The position numbers were made by a program, and so were the translations under genes. Under the pieces are notes generated by a model. It saw only the letters and a program-made list of their open reading frames with translations, was not told the origin of the DNA and made no database searches. A stretch of DNA of 64,000 bases from Styela clava (taxonomy: Eukaryota). This document shows, one piece after another, positions 19,640 through 62,341 of this stretch. The stretch is taken from positions 13,702,001-13,766,000 of the forward strand of contig NC_135264.1 in NCBI RefSeq assembly GCF_964204865.1, in the 5' to 3' direction. Position 1 is the first letter of the stretch. Each line of letters begins with the position of its first letter.

Positions 19640-20332
19640 AAAAAAATTTGTGTACTATTCTTTCTGAAAAATTGTGTTCAATCTCAAATTCGAATTCGCC
19701 GTTGAACAATTTATTTATATTGAATAAATGTAATCAAATACGCTGGTTTAGGTGTGTTCCGTGACATATTTTATGACAAAAATGTATAATCAATTTCACA
19801 GGGGTTCCTCCAGCTTTTTGGAATGTTTCATTGTGGTTCCAATTCACCAAAAAGGTTGAAGACCAATGTAATAGACCAATTCGCGAGCTCGATAGCTTCA
19901 CAATTAACTAGTGTATCTGGCATCATGCCAACCACACAGCACAGGGGCGTTTCTAAGAGTGGGGCAGTCGCGCAGCACGATGTGTTGCTTATAGTCCGAT
20001 GTTTTAAATAAAAATAATACAAAACATTTCACTCTCAATTACTCCTCTATATATTCCATGTATATTAACATCTATCATTTGTTCACCCCCAAATTATTTT
20101 TGAGTTCAGGTATAAGGGTCATCATTATCAGGAAGCAGAAAAGTTTAACACGCCCATGCCACCACCTCACCCAAGGATATGATCAGGAATGGAGAATCAC
20201 AATTCTGTAGCTTTGAAATATGCACGCGCGCATACTTGCAATCCATCATGTCAGTGCTTAACGAAAATTATTGTTGGTTCTTGTAACTTGCACGTTGAAT
20301 ATTTTTACAACTTTGGGTTTTTGTATATATAT

Positions 20333-21850
20333 TTATTCTCCCAAAAACACATTTGATAATTTACGAAAAAATGTTCCATCCCTACGACTCTCTTTCGGAA
20401 CACACGATACAACTTTTTCCTTCATATCTTGTATTTTCTTTTGCATCTCTTGCGTCAATGGGTGGTTTGTTCCCAACTCTATCTTATACTGCTTTAGTGT
20501 TTCCTTAAACATATAAACAAAAAAACACTTAAATATATACTTTACATCAAGTTGAAGGGACTGAAACCTGTGGACAAGGTGGTATATTCACTTGGCTAAC
20601 ACAGACAGTCCCCGAACTCGAAGTAGAACTAAAATATGGAAAAACAGAACAAATTTATGGCCTAACTTGATACATATACTACGGGAGTGCCTAAATATAT
20701 ATATATTTACTTATGCTGCGATAAATAAACTATGGTAAAAACACGATTGATTTTCACAGCGGAATGAAATATTCAGTATGGGATTTGCATCAACAATCCA
20801 CGAGATATACAACAGAGCACACGAGCTGTTCGCGTTGCCCGTATTTCTTCACCTAACAGTAGGGCTGGGCATTTACGAATACCGGATGATTTCAGAATCG
20901 AATCGAATACTTTTTTCGAATTGAATCTTGACTACGAGATATGTAATCACATGTGGCATTTTTATTGTATTTGGTCTTCTCAAAGCATGATTTACTGAAT
21001 TCGCGTTAATGCAATAAAGTGATATATATATCAATAACTCACAAGGAACAAAATAGTCATATGTCAGGATTGCGTTATAAAAGGTATCGCTTCGATAAAA
21101 AAAAAATCGGGGAATTTTCACCTCGACCTATGGTGGACAGAGAGAAGAAACAAGATGGCGGCAATTTGAGATTTTCGTCTAACTCTAAACTGATTCGAAT
21201 AATTTACTATTCGATTCGAAATGCCCAGTCCTACCTAACATATCTCTTCTCAGGATATTTAGGAATTAGCATATGCAATAAATTGTGCCGATATTCACAA
21301 TATATATATCGTTATTTACAGTGTTCGAAATTGAGTGAGTCAGATTCTAAATCTCGACTACTGGACTTAGTTTTTAACTATACGCATCACTGGCAAAATT
21401 TGAAACTCCGAACTCGTTTATACTAACTTGTAGAATTCCCAAGACTTCCTCATTTATGGAATGCTCTATAGGGGCGGGAATTTCGATTGCCGTTTGTTTA
21501 GTAACATCACGAATATAATTCAAATGGTCTTCGTCTTTAGCGAATTGTCCCAAAGATGTCATTTGGGTCCATCTTTTAATCAATGTCATGGCTTTGATTT
21601 GTCGATTTAATCTTTTTGCCACCGACTTTAGTGTTTTCTTGGGTGACTCTTCGGCTTCTGGCTCGTTTTGTGACTTGACAGCTAATTTGGCAGCCGCACC
21701 CCACATTCCCCTCTTTGGTTTTATGGAGGGGGCTGCCGCCTCGGTGCTCTTGCTTGAAGATTGCTCATTCTTTTCTTTTTGGATTGTTTTCCCATCGATA
21801 GGGTCATTTTCTTCATCGGTTTCGATATCCGATACGCTTCTTTCACTCAT
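20333..21850 (-). CDS. Two-exon 197-aa protein (exons 21850-21428, 20503-20333) with a CatSper-zeta/TEX40-like C-terminal region
   Basis: ORF 21374-21850 has a phase-0 donor CAA|GTTAGT at 21427. Acceptor TTTAAG|GAA at 20503 continues ETLKQYKIELGTNHPLTQEMQKKIQDMKEKVVSC...VFLGE*. The N-terminus is low-complexity and charged. The gene structure is well supported; the family assignment rests on recalled similarity. Confidence 0.7.
20538..20691. mobile_element. Truncated inverted copy of Merlin-like MITE family A
   Basis: Reverse complement of the family A body (TTTACATCAAGTTG...CACTTGGCTAACACAGACAGTCCCCGAACTCG...ACTACGGGAGTGCC). Confidence 0.7.
20860..21233. mobile_element. hAT-type MITE (TAGGGCTGGGC TIR, TCGAAT-rich) in the intron of the CatSper-zeta-like gene
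   Basis: TIRs TAGGGCTGGGCATT / AATGCCCAGTCCTA and TSD CCTAACAG/CCTAACAT. A partial inverted copy lies at ~41975-42110. Confidence 0.8.
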
Positions 21851-28250: not shown

Positions 28251-31200
28251 TCATCTTCTTGTAATGTAGCTCTTTGATACAGAGATGATCATAGCTGTGA
28301 AAAATCAGTGTTTTGTGTTATTACTGTACTTTCCATAAACTAGGTTGATATTAAGATGTCGTCAAATTTTAGAAGACTTCGGTCCAGTCCATATCGGGTA
28401 TAGGGCTAGTTCAGATGCCGTGTTAGTAAAGCCACGAATATGTTATGAGCTAGTTTGATGGATCAACCTCCCTCCAGCTCCTAGTAATCTATATTATAAT
28501 TAACCAGTACTTCAATCAAATAAATGATTTTCATACTTTTAAATTTGAAACCCGGTAGCGATCATACCCATATAATTCCCTGAACCAGAGCTGGAGAATT
28601 GGGATCTCAATCCAGCTTTTCTTTTGATAGTGATAATGTGTAAACTTGCTTACAACACGGATTTCAGAAATTACTCTGTGACACAGGTTGCACACCTCTG
28701 AAGCCTGGTGAAATTCAATAATAAACTTCCTTACCTGTAAACCACAGTGACCATAGCAAAACATGAACAGGCAACATTTCAGAATAATCTCTTATTAATC
28801 GAATCATGTCTACCACCGTGCCTCTCTCGTCTTTTTTCTTCGATTTCTGTCAAATAAATGATTCATATATATTAAAATTTTATTGTTTATTGGTGCCGTT
28901 CTATAAACGACCTTTACTCTACAAAATCAGAAGAGCGACTTGCTCATAACACACTAAGAATCTAAAGATTGAACAAAAAACAACGTTTCAAAGTAATGGT
29001 AATGAGAGTTTTTCTGTGGACGGTTGTTCGGACTTCAAAATTTTATTTTCAGTGAGGTGTTGTAGGGATTTTTGTGGATTATTTAAAGTTCAGGATCAAG
29101 AAAGGCCATCAACGATACAATCTTAACTTGGTATCAATTCATTTGGGCCGCCATAAATATATCAATAATGTGTCTAACTTCGGACAGTGTTAAAATAGAT
29201 ATTTAATACGTTCCCGCATTACAAAGCTCATTTTCTATAAATTTACCCTATTATGTGCAAATACATCTGTTTCCGATTTCAAAATGAAATTAGGGAATAT
29301 ATTCGGTTTGGTCATCCCTGATTAACAATTTTCATTTTTGCCCGAGCATTAGCTACTTGCCTTAGAATCCAGGTTGTGGAACTTTAAAAACTGTTTGAAC
29401 TGCTTGTCATTTTTATCCACCTTTGGTAAGTATGTGCGTTCTTTATTCCTTCTCCAAATCCCTTTGGGTATGTTGCCGCTTTTAGTCAAAAGGGTGAAGT
29501 GGTAATGATATAACTCTGCTTTGATGTATTTCGGAGGAGTTTCTTTGAACGGATAAGAGTCCTTATCCAGTAACTTGACCACTAAAAAATTACAGAAAAG
29601 TTGTTTTATAATTTTGTTCGTTTGTGATTGGTCACCAATAGGGCTTGGCATTTTGAATAGCCGCCATTTTGTTTTTTTCTCTCTCATATGCCAAAGTGAA
29701 TTCGTCATTTATTTACCGAATCTATATATTTATTATGCACACTGATAGAACCCATAACATAAAAAAATGAACATACAATTAATTGCCAATCTTCCAATAA
29801 TTCAAGATTCAATTTGAAAATAATATTCGATTCTGAAATCATTCGGTATTGGACAATGCCCGCCTTAGTCACAAATAATAGTAACCTACCAGTTTCCTCT
29901 CCAGATAACATTTTGTCGACAAGACTTAAAAACCACGGGTTTTGTTGATATTGTCCAAGTGCCGCAAACCACATCTGCCAGTCCAGTCTAGGTTGATGGG
30001 GAACTGAAAGTATGATTTCATAATAAATATCTTTTTTATCTGTGGAGTCGAAGGAGATCTAGATGATTGGGGTATAACAGGGACTACTAACAAAGGTCAG
30101 ATCTCGCACACCTACTTTCTTTCTGATTTTCATAAAATATTGCAATAAACAATAGTAATCGATTATAATAGAAAAAATATCCTAATGTACAACTAGAGAA
30201 ATATACACCCTATCAATGGTAGTGTAGCCTACCTTATTTGTTAAAATCCTCTCTATCTATGCATAAAACTACCTCAATCGTTCAATCTTAAGGGATTGCT
30301 TCGCTAGGTAAATGTGTGAGTCTCATTCAGGTTTTTGTACAGTTTAAGTAGTTTATACGTCCACAGCATAATTTCTCCCCAGTTGGGAAAACATTACACT
30401 ATATAAAAGGCGCAACTAAATGAAAAAAAACTCACCAATCCATGGAAGACTTCTTGAAGTATTTCCTGGCTTGTATTGGAATTCAATCTCCTATAATGAT
30501 ATGATAAAGAATTTTGAATATGAGTCTTAAATATTACCCAGTATTGGCAAAACCAAACAAAACACAAACCTGCCATGGCCCATTTTCTAGGTGACTTCCT
30601 TTTACAATGACTTCTGGGCGACCTCCGACCCCAGTCATAGAACGGAACAATCCATATGAATGTACCAATTGATATTTATTTGAAGTGTCGTGCCACCTCT
30701 GCAACACTGGCCAGGAGCCTTTGTCTGTCATTAGAGTCTTGAATGGAACCTTTATAGAAATTAGGAGTTGGATATCAATTGCCTAGTTAATAGGATTTAT
30801 TGGTGCTCACGAAGTATGCGAACCAAGATGGCGGACATCGGAGCGTAACAGGTTAGGGTTAGGCGATAATTTTTTTCCTATTTTCCTTATTTTAGTCCTA
30901 TTATCAGTTCGAAGACTAGCCAAGAGCCTCCCGTAGTATTTATACCTAAAATTATGGCCTAACCCTAACCTAGTACACATATTACATTCCGATGTCCGCC
31001 ATCTTGGTTCGCATACTTCGGGAGCCCCGATATATTATTTATTGCCGGCGGAAAGGAAAGACGATAAGACTGCTTAATCATATGACGAACCACTGCCTCT
31101 CACCCAGTCACCAGTCCAAGTCAGTTAGTTAGCCAGTTATTTGTTTCAAATACATGGAATTGATGGTGGAGGAAACTGTAATCTACCAGCAGTTACGTGA

Positions 31201-38084: not shown

Positions 38085-39641
38085 TCATGAATTTGTAGTG
38101 TCTTTAGTATTTAGAATAGCATTCAAACCCCAATCTCGATCACTGAGTTTATGTCGCCGAAATTCAATAATTTGACATGTTTTTTGCATATGTTCGATAA
38201 AGGTATTCATACTTTCTATATTGCAATTTTTCACGATATTATGTGAATTGTCAAAAGGATTTGTAATCCATAGCTGTTTATTAGAACTAGGCCGAGCCCG
38301 AATGAGGCCATATTTAGGTTGCATCTTATATCCCATTAGACCATATCTTGCAAAATGTTCAAAAAATCCACATATTATTTGCTCTACCGAATCTGAATTA
38401 TTCATTTGCACAAATTTAGCAGGAGTGGAAAACAATTTGAACTCATCTCGGCGCACAGATCCAATTTTATGCATCGGAGGTATAATATCAATCTTCATAA
38501 GATACATTAAAATTAACATTTGAAGCATAAAAGGGGTAAAGCCATGGAAATTCATTCCATGTGAGAGTAAATTTCGATCTTCAGCCCATTTTCTTATTAT
38601 AATCATTACTTGAAGGACACGACTATCATATCTCATATACCAATTTAAAACGTTCAACATACTATTGGAATTCAATTGATTCGCAGAAATATCAACAGAT
38701 AAATTGACAAGGGAAAAATGAAATTTGACAATAGGAATCCTGGCTTGCGATATAAATTTTACATTCTTAGCCCCGGGGAGATGTTGTAATACATGTTTGA
38801 TTTCTTCCAAAACTTCAACGCTTTCTTTGAAAAGTTCCCTTCTTGTTGCGCCCTCTGTATCCATATATTGAATCGAGTTGGGCAAAGGCTTAGATATATA
38901 TTTTATGAAATCTTTAGTAAGAAGTACGACATCAAAGTCTGTTCCAGGTCTTCCAGCCCCGCTTAAACTCGAACCATAAGGTCGTACATGCACAATTCCT
39001 GTATGTTTTGCAAAGAATTTCTTTAGCACATTGAGGAAGATATAACGCACACGTATTTCAGCTGATGACATGACATTTCGTTCAGTGAATATTTTCATTT
39101 GATCCTCCATCGTCTCCTGCTGATCTAGAAGTTGATGAAGTGTGTTTGTTTTTGATTTCGGTAAACTGCCGATAATACTTGATGACGCTTGCTTTTTTGA
39201 TGTTGGTTCCGTACCAGTTTTAATCGAAACCATCTGGTTTTCGATGGCACCATTTTTACCTTGGTAGAGTATTGTATTTGCAGATTCCACATTTCGATAT
39301 TGTACAACATAACGATTCGTTGTGCCAGGTAACAGTGAAAAAAAGTCTATTTCACCAACACTTTCTAATATATTTCTCATTTGGTCAGAATTTTCACTGG
39401 ACCAATTTTTATCTCCTTCCACGACAATACTGTGTTTCGCTTGCGTCATCAGATACTGTTGTATTTTTTCATGAAATAAATGGGGATCCATCAGAACATC
39501 TCTTGCATCTCGAACATGTGGAAATAATGATGTAGTTTCCACAGTATCAGAATATTTATTCCATATTTTATGATTCCGACAGCTCGATATTAAAATGCTT
39601 CTTTTCACATAAAACACTAGTGTTTTATGCAGTACATTCAT
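38085..39641 (-). CDS. MTPAP: Mitochondrial poly(A) polymerase (PAPD1/TENT6), intronless, ~518 aa
   Basis: Nucleotidyltransferase motif RPYGSS...GTDFDV, ARIPIVKF..VDIS, PAP-associated NPFDNSHNI and C-terminal WGLNAIL. It has an N-terminal basic presequence-like segment and an RRM-like (RL) region typical of MTPAP. First ATG is at 39641. Confidence 0.85.
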   Translation of the reverse strand: MNVLHKTLVFYVKRSILISSCRNHKIWNKYSDTVETTSLFPHVRDARDVLMDPHLFHEKIQQYLMTQAKHSIVVEGDKNWSSENSDQMRNILESVGEIDFFSLLPGTTNRYVVQYRNVESANTILYQGKNGAIENQMVSIKTGTEPTSKKQASSSIIGSLPKSKTNTLHQLLDQQETMEDQMKIFTERNVMSSAEIRVRYIFLNVLKKFFAKHTGIVHVRPYGSSLSGAGRPGTDFDVVLLTKDFIKYISKPLPNSIQYMDTEGATRRELFKESVEVLEEIKHVLQHLPGAKNVKFISQARIPIVKFHFSLVNLSVDISANQLNSNSMLNVLNWYMRYDSRVLQVMIIIRKWAEDRNLLSHGMNFHGFTPFMLQMLILMYLMKIDIIPPMHKIGSVRRDEFKLFSTPAKFVQMNNSDSVEQIICGFFEHFARYGLMGYKMQPKYGLIRARPSSNKQLWITNPFDNSHNIVKNCNIESMNTFIEHMQKTCQIIEFRRHKLSDRDWGLNAILNTKDTTNS

Positions 39642-41740
39642 ATTATACACAGTTTCTAGTTATCATATCTTCTATTATGTTAAGATATAGAAAATTTAAA
39701 CAAAGATTTTTCAAAGTTTGATAACATTCTAACAAAAGCTTATTACAGTATTAGCATATGGCTGATTGCAATATAACTACTGACAGACTAATGAGACATA
39801 GAACTCAAACAATTCCCTTATAATTTAAACCAGATATCATACAATCAAAGTCATATTTTTACAAGATATGCCGAATTTGACACTTGAAAATCAGTTTTTT
39901 TTTTCAGTTATAAATTATATACGGGTATATATTTCAGTATTTAATAATCACACGTTTGCAATTGCAGCAACCCAGTAAAAAAATTCTACAACTTTATAGT
40001 CTACTCAGATATTTGTTTCAAATTGTTACTTTATTATTTCATGGTAGACTTCTTCTCTATTATTTGTACACTGTGTGTGTGCAATATAAAAACTAACAAC
40101 GCAGAAACAGCGGAAGACGAAATGCGCTATGTGATGATGTAGCGTGTCAGTAACATCGTTGATATGTCTTCATAAGTCAGACGACAGCGGTGAGTGTCGT
40201 GTCTTTTTTTATTGCCAAATTGAATTCCATTGCCAATATGGAACTATTTGATTATATTTTTTTGTTTTTGTCCAAATACATCAAGCTATATCAACGGGCG
40301 CACCCCGTTGCAAGATAATGTATGTTTCCCCGAGAATCGGTTTTCTCGTTTATGTTGGTAACAATGACCAATCAGCAAAAAGTCAACGATGACGGAACTA
40401 TTGTAATTTTTGCAGCTAATATTACCCCATTTTCGCGGTTTTGCGTATTATATGTCAGTCTTTAGTTGCGTTTCTAAAAATAGTTGTAAATCAGATAGTA
40501 ACTTAATTGTCATTATGTCTTCCGATGAGCTTTAGTTGCAATAATCAAAAACGATTCTTGGAAAAGCTTCGAATAGACTAGGCTGAAATCAGCTTATGTG
40601 TAGTCGGCAAGCGGTTGTATAATATAAATAAATAATGGTTTTCATAAATCAGTTTGTAAGGGCCAAAGCGTATATATAATATAAGCGAGGCAACGCTCAG
40701 ACAATGGACGCCTTTCTCGGCAATTTAACACGGCGCCTTATGAGAAGTTTCAACACAATTATTGAAACATACCTATTATTTTCACTAATATTTTGAGTAG
40801 AAAAATTTTGAAGGTCGCGTTTTGAAGTAGAATCTTAGCCGTACATGCTTATATCCTTTCATGTTGGCCAAATTACATTTATAGTACATTAAATTGTCTT
40901 TGAAGACAAGTATACCGGTTCCGAGTTGCTTCCGAAGTAAATTGGCCATTCAAATCGTCATAATTAACCATTTGACAATGGCGTTCCTTATGACGTCACA
41001 GATGAAAAGTTGTATTTTTTCTTCGAAATTACCGGCCAACCCAACTTTGCTTCAATGGCCGTTTCTATTTTCTGGTTGACATTTTTCGGTCGTCAATCTC
41101 CATAATGCCCTACTGCTCAGCTCAAAGCTGCGCTAGAAGAACAAATGACATTGTAGGATTGTTGCGGAGACATTTTACAGCCTCAAATTAGCGTATCACT
41201 ATAAATGGAAATATGACCAAAAATGGTTCTACGCTGTGTTTGGGGTCAAATTTAGCGCATTGGTTAGTTTTTTTTCCTAAATTTCGTTATATATTAAGAT
41301 AGCATATATCTTAAAGTTCAAAATCCACCCTTCAGTTTCATTCTATCACTTGTACCAGCGGACTTATTCGATTCGGTACAACAACACGACGAAAATTTCT
41401 CATAAGACTCCATTGTTTCGCGTTTCCCAAATATGGCACAAGATGGCGTCCATGAACTTGCTTAACATTAGGCAAGTTGGTTGCCGGCCGTTGGTAAGGG
41501 CCAACTCCCCAAAAAACACTCGCAAAAAAGCATCAAAAATTTTGCAATAGTTAAGTATGGGGAAATTTTCTAGGATCAAGGGTCGAAGGACATTCATAAC
41601 GGCTCGTTCAAAGTTGCAAATATTTCATTAATGTATCGTAACAGTTAAAAAAAAAGTTAACGTTAAAGTGTTAATATATTGTTCAGCCTGTTGTAGCTGC
41701 GCGAGTCCGCATGTGCAAGCGTAGGGAGTTTTAAAAAGGC

Positions 41741-55397: not shown

Positions 55398-57817
55398 GAA
55401 ATAATCTTATAGGAATGAATGAATCCTTTGAATAAATGACAATTTTATGAGCAATTGTGCTTTATTGATTAGGTCAGCTTGCCAGATCTGTGTTGTTTGG
55501 AGATATATGCTTCTAGTAGGAGTATAGCTGACCAGGCATGAATCGCATGGGAACCAAATCCACTCGTTGCTTGGTTGTATAGAGTTACTCTAGCCTTGTT
55601 AGAACCAAATGTCTTCGCAAATTAATTTTGGATTCGCCCCAGGAAGCACAATAAACGACATGTCGCACACTACACTTCGATTCTCCTCGAATGTGAGGAA
55701 TAATAAATGGTTTCAAGTGGTTGAACAGCGGCAAGGTTTACTCCCCCAGCTTGCACGAACCTTTTTTCAAATGTCATTTTCCCACTTTTAATATCGACCT
55801 AAGAATTGACTGACTGTGCACATCGTAATTGGTCAGTCCTATTTTATTGACAATTTTCATTTTTGAGAGGTAACATTTAAACAATACAACAATTTTATTT
55901 CGATACGTTATCCCCATTTCCCTTAATTTTTTCTGTCTTTTATTTGAACAAAAAAGTAATCTTTATATTTTTCAAAATAGCCGACCCCCCCCCCCCCAAA
56001 AAAAAAGCGTTCGCTTCGTCGTTAAAGAATGCAGATACACCGAACTCACGTTCCTGCGACCTCGAGCGCGTGATTTAGGTGTAATACAGGTATTACGTCA
56101 CCCGTATGCGATAAACAAGGTTTTTATCTGAAAAAATACGGTACCCTGGTTTACTAATGAAAATATGTTGATATAGTCTTATTATATTCGCCAAAACGAG
56201 TCCTCTTTTTTACCTTGAATCTTGACTGAGTTATTACTATATTTACGCAAAAGGTGGTATCGCAAACGTTTTTGTGCAACAGATAACAGCCCGACAGTAT
56301 TTCGAAATCGCACGTCTATACGTCTGCTCGTGGAAATGGATTTTTTTGACAACCTGCCTTATAATATTTGTGTGTCGGCGGTATTGAGCTAGAAGGCGTC
56401 ACCTTAGTTGGCGTAGCGTATGCTGTGTATCTGTATCCTTTGTTACGTCTGCGTTATGATTGTTTATCCGGTAATAAAATCCTATTTGTTGAGAAAAGGG
56501 ATTGATATATGATCCCAATCGCTTTTTGAATACCCGGCGCATATAATTAGGGAATAAACTTATACTTAGGGAATAAACTTATACTTATTATTATTATACA
56601 GTCATACGCTACCGTACGCCTCGTTTGAAGTTGTAGCACTTTTATTCAAGGTTCGTCCCGTGTGTCTGTGCAGTGTGTGTTGTTTTGCTTGTTGCAGTGT
56701 TGTGAAATGCTTAAATCATTATAAATTTTAATAATCCAAGTTAGTAGTAGGCAAGTAACATAGTGATAGATTTTAAATAAAAGACATTTGAAGGCACTAC
56801 CGGTATTGCTGTAAAATGATATTGCTGTAAGATGATACTGACATACCGGTCCCAGCAATAAAAATGGGAACCGGTAACAGAGCAGCGTAAAACACGAAAC
56901 ATTAGAAAACACAGAAACAGGGAATAAAATAAATGCAAAACTGCTGAACTGAGTTGATAATTGTGGAATTTAATGTACAAAGTTAATATGACTAGTAGAT
57001 TTGCATTCTAAAAAGAAAAAATGGTTTCAGAGAAAACTGAAACATGTCGAAATATAATTTGTTTTTTTTTCCAGTTTTGCACTGTCAGACTGTTCACTTC
57101 TGCTCCCGTCTATTTACTTCTGCAGTTATAGTTTGCGCAGTTTCACTCGATTTACCTTGCTTTGTAAATTTTTAGTAAATAAAATACAGAAATAGGTTGG
57201 GTAGGGCACAGTTCTTCAACTCCTAGTTGTCCCAATAATTTGTTCAATTAAACCGACACTCTCTGAAACGAGGGCATCCGGCATGACGGCAGATGCGTCA
57301 GATTGGGCCATGCCTGTCTCAATAATAATTTGAATAAATCATGATGTGCGTCGGCCGTCGCACGGCCAGAATTACGTTGTTCAGCTAAAAACCCGAATGC
57401 TGCTGTAAATAATCTTTCTTCTGTAAATTGGGTTATTTTTTCTGAGAAATCCAATGATGTCGTTTTGGGATTGTGCTTTCTTTCACCTTATTGTGCTGTG
57501 CCAGATTTTGGCGCCCTAGACTGTCTCATAACAGAGGGGTTTTCACTCACTGTTATAATTTATGTCTTTTAATGTGGGAGCTATTCTTGGAATCAGAGAA
57601 CTGTGACATACTGAGATTTGTACCTATTTCTGCCCTTTCTATCTCGCAATGAGGTAGCATGGTTGTCTAAAATAGCTATTTCATTTTGATCACAATCGGA
57701 TGTAATTCTTATATGTGATACGTTTTATCTTGTGCAGATGATTATGATAGTCCAATCTAAATCACCCATGCATGGATGACAAGTGCATAGTTGGCTGAAT
57801 GTGATGCAACAATTGTC

Positions 57818-59950
57818 ATGGAGTTTCCTATCCAATCAGAAGAATATGCGATGGATCATATAGTTGTTGAAGAAGCATCAATAGCATTAGTTCGAGAATT
57901 CTTAAATCGTAAGGGATGTAAAAATTCGCTGAGTGCTCTTGACGATGAACTACCAAGAGGTGATGCCAGTATATGCAATAGAGCGGAATTAGCACAAACA
58001 TTACACATTGCCCCCCTTATTCGTAAAAATAAAAGCTTGACGGATCCATTTCGAACTATAATTGAAATTATTGTTTGGGATGTTATTAAAAAACACAAAA
58101 AACTAACCAATGAAAATCAAAGCAAATTAACACGACCCAGTACAGCGAAAGCTAAATTGTATTCTGCTTCAACACCAACAGGGCCCGAGACGTTAGAATT
58201 AAAGGATGTCAATTTTGAAAATAATGCGGATGTATCAAAACCTATGAAGTACGGTCAATTTCAGGACTCAATGCTGAAACATAGGAGGCAACAACCTGAA
58301 TCAACTCGAAAAACTAGATCATATAATCCTTCTATTAATCCTATGATAATTTCTGGTCTCAGGGTTTCAAATTCACTCACGAAGCACAGACAAAAGAAAG
58401 CTAGCTCTGTTGCTGAAATGTTGTCGGCAAGTCCAGATAAAATAATCTCTTCTCATGATACAATTTCTCAAGAAGACGAAAAAAAGAAAACCAAAAATGT
58501 TGTAAATTCAACTGATCATACTGAAAAAAGTACGGATACAAACTCCGCAATAGTTCCTGAGAATAAAACACATCTGAGGAATTCGTCCGATCGCTATGAG
58601 CAATCGTCACCTGGAAAGAAAAAACAGGACACTGTGCTAGTAGATTTTGATGATGAAGAATGGACCGAAGATAGTAAATGTGAAAAATGGATTTCAGGAC
58701 TGGATAAACTGAGTTTTAAATATAATACAAACAAATCCAATGAAGTATACCATGCACAACCACAACAAAAGGTTTTGGAATCTAGGAATGAATCGATTTT
58801 AAATAAAAACCAAAAACCGCAAAAAATTTCTAGAAAAGTAGGGTTCAATTTGCCGCAATCTGGCATGCCGTTGGATTTCCAATCAGCAGTAAAACTTCGC
58901 AAAATTGTGTTTGGGTCTGCAAGTGTTCGGGGATTCCCAGAACAATGGATAAATCAGTCGTTTATGTTCAGAGACTGTAAAGATGAACGAACGGTACGTT
59001 TGAGATTCGGAATCATTCAGAAAAAAGGAGGGCCGTGCGGCCTTCTTGCTGCTGTACAAAGTTATGTTTTGAAACATTTATTGTTCGGAAAAGTTGGAAA
59101 TGACGGATCTGAAATCAAAAAAGCAGAACCGTCTGCACTAAATTGCAAAAACGAAATCCGCACGAGTTGTCTCGCTGAAGCGATTATTGAAATTCTCTGG
59201 CAAGCAGGAGGCGGCCGCCGAGCAGTCGTTGCGTTACTTTCAAATAGGCAAAGTTTTAGCCCCACCGGGAATTATAAAGAAGATAGTATTACTGAATTTA
59301 TTGTAACAAAAAATTGCCAATCTTTAGAGTCTTTGCATCACACAATATATAACAGTATCTCACAATTTGAATCTGGACGAGGCGCTGCGATCTTATTACT
59401 ATATTCAGCTATATTATCCAGGGGAATCGGAGAAGTAACATCAGATATGGATGATCCTGGCAACATATTAATGGGAGCACATTCCTATTGTACACAGGAG
59501 ATGGTAAACCTTCTCACATTGGGTTTTGCTATTTCCAATACTTTCAATGACACAGTGCAATTAGATGGAGGTTTGATATTAAAAGGTGCCAAAGCTCGTT
59601 CTAACATAGGTTTGTTGTCTTTGTTTGAACATTATGGTTCATGCACTGTCGGAAGTTACTTAAAAACCCCTAGGTATCCCATTTGGATTGTTTGTAGCGA
59701 GAGTCATTTCAGCGTTTTGTTTTGTTTAAATCGTGATCTTGTCAATGATTGGACGGTAGAACGTTTGTTTGATCTGTACTATTATGATGGATTAGCCAAT
59801 CAGGATGAAGAAATGAGACTTACTGTGAATACGATGCAAAAACCACAACCAAAAAAAGATAATGACTTGATTCCGCCTTTAGAACTTTGCATTCAAACAA
59901 AATGGCCTGATTCAGTTATTGATTGGAATGGTACTGATCCTTTGCTTTAA
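57818..59950 (+). CDS. MINDY4: MINDY-family deubiquitinase MINDY4 (FAM188B), intronless, ~700-710 aa
   Basis: N-terminus MDHIVVEEASIALVREFLNRKG is MINDY4-like. Catalytic Cys in GIIQKKGGPCGLLAAVQ, YCTQEMVNLL, catalytic His in PIWIVCSESHFSVLF, FDLYYYDGLANQ and C-terminal PPLELCIQTKW..IDWNGTDPLL. Start is 57818 or 57851. Confidence 0.92.
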   Translation: MEFPIQSEEYAMDHIVVEEASIALVREFLNRKGCKNSLSALDDELPRGDASICNRAELAQTLHIAPLIRKNKSLTDPFRTIIEIIVWDVIKKHKKLTNENQSKLTRPSTAKAKLYSASTPTGPETLELKDVNFENNADVSKPMKYGQFQDSMLKHRRQQPESTRKTRSYNPSINPMIISGLRVSNSLTKHRQKKASSVAEMLSASPDKIISSHDTISQEDEKKKTKNVVNSTDHTEKSTDTNSAIVPENKTHLRNSSDRYEQSSPGKKKQDTVLVDFDDEEWTEDSKCEKWISGLDKLSFKYNTNKSNEVYHAQPQQKVLESRNESILNKNQKPQKISRKVGFNLPQSGMPLDFQSAVKLRKIVFGSASVRGFPEQWINQSFMFRDCKDERTVRLRFGIIQKKGGPCGLLAAVQSYVLKHLLFGKVGNDGSEIKKAEPSALNCKNEIRTSCLAEAIIEILWQAGGGRRAVVALLSNRQSFSPTGNYKEDSITEFIVTKNCQSLESLHHTIYNSISQFESGRGAAILLLYSAILSRGIGEVTSDMDDPGNILMGAHSYCTQEMVNLLTLGFAISNTFNDTVQLDGGLILKGAKARSNIGLLSLFEHYGSCTVGSYLKTPRYPIWIVCSESHFSVLFCLNRDLVNDWTVERLFDLYYYDGLANQDEEMRLTVNTMQKPQPKKDNDLIPPLELCIQTKWPDSVIDWNGTDPLL

Positions 59951-61345
59951 AGGGCTTTAATTAATAAAATACGTAGGATTACGATATCATTGTCAAATAT
60001 AATCTATGTTTAAGTACTGTGTCATAGGTTTTACCAAAATAAGTTGATTAATTCTTTGAGGGGATGTCCGTATCAATAAAGATGTGATAACAAAATTATT
60101 TTTTTTTAATTTATTTTTTTTTAAATATTTAATAACAACATTTTTTATTGTAGTTGCTTTTTCAACATCGAATCGATAGCGCAGATCAAATATTTACATG
60201 ATATTCAGTTGCAAAAACAATCAGAATAATATCAAAACATTGCGTTTGAATATTTGGTCTTCATTCATTGCTTGGTTGAATGGTGGCCTATGTGTTAGGT
60301 TTCCCTATTATAATGACAATAAGTACTAAAGTATTACTCGAATTCATGCATTGTTTCATTCATTTTCAGTTGCTTGTTGCTATCTTATTCTGTTTGACTC
60401 ATTTTTGTCATGCTTCTTCTATTTATATGCCATTTTGATTGCCTACTTTAGTTATTAACTGAAATAACTTTTTATATATTGTATACTGATTGTTAGACAA
60501 AATTTCAAATTCTGAAAAGAAAATTCAAAGCACTTTTCTAAACAGTTGGGATTCATGTCCCATTTTCACATATTAATGTCATATATTATATATTGCGGTT
60601 CTTGGCTGAACTGAACGCAAGTTTATTGCAACTGTATTATTGGACCCTCTTGTTATATTGGTGCTTGCAATTCAATTCAATATACTCAAATATATTTTAA
60701 ATCACTTTAGTTGAACTTTAATCCATGATTACTAACATTTGCACTGTAAATTTCAAAGCAATTATTTCGTAATCTCACTGTATTTTCTGTAAATTTTGTA
60801 GTTTAATACGTAGTTATTTATTTATGCTTTTAATTGGTACTCTCTGTGTTTACCTTCTTTTAGTTTATTCCAATAATATTCTATAGAGTGGTCTTATCAT
60901 TCAGTATTTTATCTTATTGAAGTGACTTCGTTTATGAACACAACCAAATAATAAGTGCCGATTAAACTCTATTATTCAAATACATTTTTTAGCGTTGGTA
61001 GATTTTTAAATTCTATTCAAATCTGAAATTTCAAATATATTTTTATGAATACCTCTATGTAAGCTATTACTTAGAAGAGTTATTGATTCAAATTGATCGT
61101 TATTTCCATGTTTGGGCATAGTCTCACCTAATCTATTAAATAATATATTGTTTTATTTGAAAAGGTGCACATTGTGTGTATTATATGTATACTTTCGAAT
61201 GACTTTTAATTAGTTTATGTATTTAAAATTTAATCTGTCTAGATAGAAATTGTTTTTGTCCTATTCTTATTAGATTTAGTAGATAATTGGAACATGTGAA
61301 AAAAGTTATTTTTTCTTTGTGTTAAGTAAAACTTGTAATTGTCAT

Positions 61346-62341
61346 ATGCTAAATATGGCGAGCAGTTCTGTTCCTTGTGACACTTTGATGATATGTCATC
61401 CCTCGATGTCAATATTAGCGAAAAAGATTAATGATCTCGTTGCCAAGTCTCAAGGTAAAAGAATTGTATTCAAAGAGGATATACATTGGAAATTTTTTGA
61501 GGACGGATATCCAAATATCTTTATCGATAATATCGAAGAATGCTCTGGGAAACATGTTATTTATCTTGGAAGTTTTTATTCTCCGTCAGTTGTTTTTGAA
61601 CAATTATCTGTGCTTTATGCTTTGCCCAAGTATTCTGTCAGATCTCTGACTTTCGTTTTACCGTTCTTTCCAACTGGTACCATGGAACGAGTTGATACCG
61701 AAGGACAAATTGCTACTGCGAGTACAACTGCACGTTTGTTGTCAGCAACACCGTTAACTGCAATGGGGCCTACCCAGTTGTTGACATATGATATTCATGC
61801 TTTGCAAGAACGGTTTTATTTTACGGATAATATTATCCCACGTCTGATGTCTGCAGTTCCAAGATTTTTACAAGAGCTTAAAACGCTCAAAAATGCAAAT
61901 GAGAAAATTGCTATTGCTTTTCCCGATGAAGGCGCACACAAGCGATTTCATACGTATTTTAAAGATTTTCCTGTGATCCGTTGTATAAAAAGAAGACGCG
62001 GTAAAGACAGGGAGATCACGATCGTTGATGGTAATCCAGAAAACCATCACGTTATAATAGTTGACGATTTGGTCAACACTGGTGGCACAGTGCTAGAATG
62101 TATATCATGTATGAAATCTGCAAAAGCTTCAAAAGTAAGCGTCTATGTTACGCATCCAGTTTTTCCTCAAGATTCGTGGAAAAAGTTCATACATGCAGAG
62201 GAGAATTTAAATACTCCTCATATGTTTTGGATAACTGATTCATTACCGCATGCATTAGAAATTGTTAAATATAAACCATTTCAATTGATTTCTCTAGCTC
62301 CAAGTATATGTGCAGCCTTAGGAGTTGACATTCCAGAATAA
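61346..62341 (+). CDS. Class II (plant PRS3/PRS4-type) ribose-phosphate pyrophosphokinase, intronless, ~330 aa
   Basis: WKFFEDGYPNIFI, FEQLSVLYALP, VLPFFPTGTMERV..EGQIATA, DIHALQERFYF, IAFPDEGAHKRF and the PRPP-binding loop VIIVDDLVNTGGT, then VYVTHPVFP. These are class II signatures and differ from class I (PYARQD, DLHA.QIQGFF). Confidence 0.9.
   Translation: MLNMASSSVPCDTLMICHPSMSILAKKINDLVAKSQGKRIVFKEDIHWKFFEDGYPNIFIDNIEECSGKHVIYLGSFYSPSVVFEQLSVLYALPKYSVRSLTFVLPFFPTGTMERVDTEGQIATASTTARLLSATPLTAMGPTQLLTYDIHALQERFYFTDNIIPRLMSAVPRFLQELKTLKNANEKIAIAFPDEGAHKRFHTYFKDFPVIRCIKRRRGKDREITIVDGNPENHHVIIVDDLVNTGGTVLECISCMKSAKASKVSVYVTHPVFPQDSWKKFIHAEENLNTPHMFWITDSLPHALEIVKYKPFQLISLAPSICAALGVDIPE

Follow-up and report, generated by a model that had tools for sequence, protein, structure and literature searches.

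In the present analysis of a 64,000-nucleotide stretch of the genome of the tunicate Styela clava (NC_135264.1, positions 13,702,001 to 13,766,000 of the forward strand; hereafter the window), we found a gene that is most probably the single-copy Styela orthologue of CatSper-zeta (CATSPERZ/TEX40). The gene has two exons and encodes a soluble protein of 197 aa, for which a role in the CatSper channel like that of mouse zeta may be inferred. We give this reading as a whole a probability of roughly 0.82. The minus strand carries the gene, whose features are as follows (positions are those of the window).

21428..21850, minus strand: coding exon 1, residues 1-141 (from the sequence, the open reading frame and its translation; genome match E 2.6e-85)
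20504..21427, minus strand: single phase-0 intron of 924 nt, GT..AG (read from the sequence)
20333..20503, minus strand: coding exon 2, residues 142-197, and TAA stop codon (20335-20333) (genome match E 1.1e-29)
20402..21631, minus strand: domain span conserved throughout the family and split by the intron, residues about 74-175 (profile alignments)
20332..20337, minus strand: AATAAA hexamer that resembles a poly(A) signal and overlaps the stop codon (sequence read; putative function)
20859..21234, no strand assigned: MITE-like element of 376 bp within the intron (inverted repeat and genome copies)

A search with exon 1 retrieved the RefSeq 'uncharacterized protein LOC120334698' of Styela clava (P0001; 197 aa, 99% identity), and this protein, not the window copy, was used for the full-length searches. 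Against PDB, the top two matches of P0001 were mouse CatSper-zeta (9ubw_K and 7eeb_K; E 0.0023 and 0.003, respectively). Residues 122-170 of the 197 in the Styela protein aligned without gaps with residues 135-183 of the 194 in mouse zeta, and 17 of 48 positions were identical. An earlier reading made from the DNA letters alone (the sequence-only reading) had proposed that the product is CatSper-zeta-like, with a gap-free similarity to human zeta of about 46 residues and about 16 identities at the same relative position in proteins of similar length; the PDB alignment confirms the gap-free similarity for mouse zeta. When exon 1 and exon 2 were each searched alone, no match was found in Pfam or PDB, because the intron splits the motif in two.

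The similarity became much stronger when profiles were used. A profile of the Styela and Ciona proteins (A2, the tunicate profile) matched mouse zeta in PDB at E 1.2e-4, and its next match was at E 0.6. Searched against 1.84 billion representative proteins, the same profile gave 44 matches at E <= 1e-3; these include a Podarcis cluster at 2e-8 that contains 'CATSPERZ' of Podarcis muralis, CATSPERZ of Pelodiscus sinensis at 2.6e-7, and snake and kiwi proteins that also bear the name CATSPERZ in RefSeq. A profile of 12 non-mammalian vertebrate members (A3) matched mouse zeta in PDB at E 2.3e-12, with no other match below E 1, and a 33-sequence metazoan profile (A4) did so at E 3.2e-12. Aligned with each other by hhalign, A2 and A3 gave a probability of 98.5% and an E of 3e-15 over 72 columns with 33% identity. 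Furthermore, A3 had exactly one match in the six-frame translated Styela genome (E 9.8e-6), and this was at 20411-20506 of the window, that is, exon 2. A further homologue search with the family profile, the reach of which was restricted by the word index, yielded nothing new beyond Ciona savignyi and a handful of unnamed proteins. From the PDB, profile-profile and whole-genome matches, the homology of the Styela protein to CatSper-zeta, in practice orthology, is therefore well supported at the level of sequence.

The relatives found in these searches come from a wide range of animals. Among invertebrate deuterostomes, the two Ciona species, C. intestinalis (LOC100185937, 245/249 aa) and C. 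savignyi, carry full-length orthologues, and further relatives were found in Branchiostoma lanceolatum, Ptychodera flava, Asterias amurensis and Acanthaster planci. Protostomes are represented by Lingula anatina, Owenia fusiformis and Lamellibrachia satsuma, cnidarians by Nematostella vectensis and Hydractinia, and fishes by gar, a shark, sturgeon, anchovy, mudminnow and hake. Judged from these matches, the zeta family spans animals from cnidarians to vertebrates. Nearly all of the named matches are from species in which CatSper genes have been recorded, or from their close kin. CatSper is recorded in Lingula, Acanthaster, gar, kiwi, Podarcis, Pelodiscus, Nematostella, Ciona and Lamellibrachia, and also in starfish and lancelet, and it is recorded in kin of two of the fishes (Esox for mudminnow, both Esociformes, and Clupea for anchovy, both Clupeiformes). 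The list of 44 matches, which is not a formal test of absence, had none from amphibians, zebrafish, molluscs or flatworms, whose rows in the published table of CatSper subunits (PMC12638846) are empty.

Two matches are possible exceptions to this co-distribution, the hake protein P0033 (Merluccius merluccius; the row of Gadus morhua is empty) and the P0021 cluster (Hydractinia symbiolongicarpus; the row of Hydra vulgaris is empty). Either CatSper persists in those two species, or zeta can outlive the channel. Two long low-complexity proteins also contain a zeta-like domain: P0038 (1218 aa, domain at 886-977) and P0013 (424 aa), whose cluster carries no name. They may indicate that the family reaches past the animal phyla sampled here, or that the domain can be part of a fused architecture.

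In the trimmed family alignment, the conserved domain has about 95 residues. It begins with a helix ending in I-x-K-W, followed by an (F)-x-K-D-x-x-H segment, and then comes the core, which consists of hydrophobic-P-x-P, an E-E-V-L..I-L helix, Y...L-G-x-x-H-x-L-T and a last helix. Three residues never vary within the family (P125, Y147 and G152) and two hardly do (E135 and T158); mouse zeta has all five. Mouse CatSper-zeta (PDB 7EEB chain K, 9LWO, 9UBW) is likewise small (about 200 aa) and soluble, its N-terminal part is disordered, and it shares the C-terminal core with the Styela protein, namely the P-x-P, the E-E-V-L..I-L helix, the Y...L-G-x-x-H-x-L-T and the IQ-like helix. However, the Styela protein has an additional upstream conserved segment of about 50 residues (helix 74-97 and KD..H), which is common to the other non-mammals. 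In fact, the RefSeq CATSPERZ proteins of Podarcis muralis, Pelodiscus sinensis, Erythrolamprus reginae and Apteryx mantelli have the same domain of about 95 residues, upstream Trp helix included, and so do unnamed fish members (gar, shark, sturgeon and anchovy). The sequence just before the core differs between the groups, as vertebrates have W-x-M-G...H-x-R-G-Y and tunicates K-S-V-A-K-R..N-R-Q-I-K-A. Since mouse zeta can be aligned over the core alone (about 50 residues), it seems that mammals retain a shortened form. The ancestral domain would have been longer than the stretch still alignable in mouse, and would have included the upstream Trp helix and the KD..H segment.

An AF2 model built with the family alignment had a mean pLDDT of 75.8. 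Residues 1-70 were without secondary structure (pLDDT 46-61), and helices were predicted at 74-97, 107-122, 126-150 and 156-175 (pLDDT 86-98). No hydrophobic stretch that could serve as a transmembrane segment is visible in the 197-aa sequence. The protein thus has the zeta type of build, with about 200 aa, no transmembrane segment, a disordered N-terminus and a helical C-terminus, and its C-terminal helical domain of about 100 residues is, on the alignments, homologous to the EFCAB9-binding core of mouse zeta. The sequence-only reading had also pointed to two upstream basic helices as calmodulin/EF-hand-binding segments. The second of them (74-97, ..IKRW) is confidently predicted to be helical and is conserved throughout the family; the first (KRGMWG...) lies in a segment with a pLDDT below 50 and is conserved in close relatives only.

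Mouse CatSper is gated by zeta paired with EFCAB9, and this pair senses Ca2+ and pH (10.1101/459487); in mouse, ARMH2 completes a ternary cytosolic subcomplex (Zhao et al., PMC12638846). In mouse zeta, L174/Q175 of an IQ-like motif is required for EFCAB9 binding (PMC8147001). These residues align with M161/Q162 of the Styela protein, so that the pair is M-Q in Styela and L-Q in mouse, a conservative change; the pair is invariant in Ciona. Reptile members have M-E at this position, and because Glu there replaces the Q, the IQ-like pair is not a strict signature of the family and is suggestive rather than diagnostic. If it acts as zeta does in mouse (Hwang 2019; Hwang 2021; Zhao 2025), the Styela protein would be located in the flagellum of the sperm, beneath the pore of CatSper, and there, along with ARMH2, its C-terminal helices would hold the EF-hand protein EFCAB9. 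Ca2+ and pH would alter its grip on EFCAB9 and thereby the gating of the channel, and the upstream Trp helix and KD..H segment may add contacts. We infer that the Styela protein fills the zeta role in a zeta-EFCAB9-ARMH2 module.

The protein could instead be a true member of the zeta family that acts outside CatSper in tunicates, for example with another EF-hand or flagellar protein, the role in CatSper having arisen later, in vertebrates. Function, partners and expression have been proven for mouse zeta and are extrapolated to the Styela protein by homology, which leaves some room for such a role, and so do the conserved Trp helix and KD..H segment, which do not align with mouse zeta, and the hake and Hydractinia matches, as Gadus and Hydra, their kin in the published table, are listed without CatSper genes. 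However, apart from these two, the named matches are from taxa where CatSper is recorded, in the species itself or in its kin. Furthermore, for Styela clava the OrthoDB-based source data of a published figure have entries for ARMH2, EFCAB9, CatSper1-4, beta, gamma and theta, and the zeta cell is empty (PMC12638846, Fig. 3); EFCAB9 and ARMH2 are entered there as 7725_0:00171c and 7725_0:000833, respectively. Zhao et al. (2025) also obtained high-ipTM predictions of zeta-EFCAB9-ARMH2 complexes in various non-mammals, which suggested conservation beyond mammals (PMC12638846). Taken against these points, a role outside CatSper seems unlikely, and a CatSper subunit remains the reading that we prefer. 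Our own search for EFCAB9 in Styela (EF-hand_7, 148 exon-level matches) gave no plausible candidate among the eight long-frame loci inspected, which included FKBP-like, PP2A-B''-like and myosin-light-chain-like frames.

In the literature of 2017-2021, zeta was called mammalian-specific (10.1101/459487, PMC8147001), and the sequence-only reading had given this as the usual description. That description is outdated. Zhao et al. (2025) describe an HMM-based search that found non-mammalian zeta sequences missed by BLAST (PMC12638846), and RefSeq already names sauropsid zeta members (reptiles and kiwi). As for ascidians, Kijima et al. (2023) did not find zeta in the Ciona genome and stated that it 'does not appear to exist' (PMC10652287), and in the ascidian literature and the OrthoDB-based tables, Ciona and Styela are still entered as having no zeta. 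Our search of the literature found no paper that names the tunicate genes or their gene ids, and none of the database records matched gives a tunicate gene under a CATSPERZ name. Thus the Styela gene is a solid new member of the zeta family, and the family itself had already been partly shown beyond mammals; the novelty is limited because Zhao et al. (2025) and the RefSeq names came first. What is new here is the correction for ascidians and the observation of an ancestral domain longer than the mammalian core. If our reading is true, the view that Ciona has no zeta is wrong, and the Styela gene fills an empty cell in the published subunit tables.

The Ca2+ that steers sperm enters mainly through CatSper, a channel whose opening depends on alkalinisation in animals from sea urchins to humans. 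This conserved alkaline gating was difficult to reconcile with a pH/Ca2+ sensor of which one half, zeta, was supposedly mammalian, and zeta in Styela and Ciona would remove the inconsistency. On balance we lean towards the view that zeta, rather than being a late addition in vertebrates or mammals, is an ancestral CatSper subunit that dates back at least to the cnidarian-bilaterian ancestor and has followed the gains and losses of CatSper. In that case, the original domain would have had about 95 residues, with the Trp helix lost in mammals, and the zeta-EFCAB9(-ARMH2) sensor would be ancestral in external fertilisers too. The zeta-EFCAB9 module could then be tested in Ciona by CRISPR; as CatSper3 has already been knocked out there, Ciona is a tractable system for testing ancestral zeta-EFCAB9 gating.

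The similarity itself might be explained differently, by chance or by convergence on a helical LG-x-x-HP-x-T motif of a generic kind, as found in TPR_12 and kinesin light chain repeats, which have in common with the Styela protein a helix-turn-helix with an L-G-x-x-H-P-x-T turn. The stretch aligned directly with mouse is short (48 residues), the E of the single sequence is about 0.002, and the structure list of the ESM Atlas contains TPR_12 clusters, at a low TM (0.32). However, the Styela motif is a single unit and not a tandem array, and it has no sequence match to these repeats in Pfam or PDB: the Pfam scans gave no TPR family at E up to 10, and the PDB searches no TPR or kinesin light chain chain at E up to 1 or 10, whereas zeta was found at 1e-4 to 3e-12. 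The profile-profile probability given above and the unique reciprocal genome match of the vertebrate profile likewise argue against such a coincidence, which we consider very improbable. The sequence-only reading had named profile searches as the way to separate TEX40 from generic TPR/kinesin-light-chain repeats, and since these found zeta and never TPR in Pfam or PDB, the TPR and chance readings were rejected.

Searches with the predicted structure contributed little to this question. Foldseek of the AF2 model against PDB gave no match at E <= 0.001, and VIA-align (wide) gave only generic helical hairpins, the best with a Z of 8.1 (a designed protein), with zeta absent from the results. These outcomes are uninformative because the subunit is elongated and helical. 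The ESM Atlas offered no more than a lead: an unnamed chordate cluster had the top feature score (0.86), and no structure reached a TM above 0.36.

The structure of the gene could be read directly from the DNA. Exon 1 starts with the ATG at 21850 and has 141 codons, ending with ...GILQ at 21428. The intron has the donor GTTAGT from 21427 and the acceptor ...tttaAG ending at 20504, and exon 2 has 56 codons and the TAA. Joined in phase 0, the two exons give the 197-aa protein. Exon 1 encodes the disordered acidic/Ser-rich N-terminus (about 1-70), the helices 74-97 and 107-122 and the P-x-P start of the core, and exon 2 encodes the LG-x-x-H-P-L-T turn, the helix with the IQ-like pair M161-Q162 and a short tail at the C-terminus; the intron thus falls inside the zeta core motif, with ...ILQ before it and ETL... 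after it. The two-exon, 197-aa open reading frame had been claimed in the sequence-only reading with a splice at 21427/20504, and these two positions are the first and last bases of the intron as read here; with its canonical GT..AG sites, the splice gives exactly the protein that had been quoted. When P0001 was searched against the 377-Mb Styela assembly, these two exons were the sole match, and the gene is therefore taken to be single-copy. The G+C content of the window is about 35%.

The RefSeq protein P0001 runs on into exon 2 just as predicted from the splice, and the model is thus more than an artefact of open reading frames. The part encoded by exon 2 is nearly invariant in the Ciona species. 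A Logan contig of 1,054 bp (P0006) encodes an uninterrupted, full-length relative that reads across the junction. Six machine-called relatives (P0002, P0003, P0007, P0008, P0009 and P0029) stop after the equivalent of ...IL(Q) followed by Val. As this is the ending produced by reading into a phase-0 GT intron, the position of the intron appears to be shared. That the two pieces are a decaying pseudogene or a mis-joined annotation without function is hardly credible, given the intact frame, the canonical splice sites and the poly(A) signal, the same 197-aa model in RefSeq, the strong conservation of the exon 2 portion in Ciona and the uninterrupted relative in the Logan contig, and the pseudogene reading was rejected.

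The window copy differs from P0001 at two residues, having S42 for F and S131 for C (codons 42 and 131, in the region of 21727 and 21460 of the window). The differences are probably haplotype polymorphism. Residue 131 falls within the conserved core; P0001, P0002 and P0008 have Cys there, and the other relatives have Asn, Asp or a different residue.

Long open frames elsewhere in the window matched the following domains.

29349-29708, minus strand: C-terminal domain of lipase maturation factor (LMF-like; long open frame match)
38085-39650, minus strand: MTPAP-like poly(A) polymerase palm domain (long open frame match)
57791-59950, plus strand: MINDY-3/4 deubiquitinase domain (E 2e-117, a single open frame of 719 aa)
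61319-62341, plus strand: PRPP synthetase (long open frame match)

The neighbours of mammalian CATSPERZ, which we take to be KCNK4 and ESRRA, have no counterpart in the window, where the LMF-like, MTPAP-like, MINDY-3/4 and PRPP synthetase genes are found instead. This lack of synteny counts for little, because gene order in tunicates is heavily rearranged.

The MITE-like element in the intron (20859-21234) has terminal inverted repeats of 16 nt, GTAGGGCTGGGCATTT and AAATGCCCAGTCCTAC, which are 94% complementary. It plays no part in the function of the gene. The element belongs to a high-copy family: a first look at the Styela genome gave 1737 candidates, and the 40 of them that were scored are full-length copies, about 72-75% identical.
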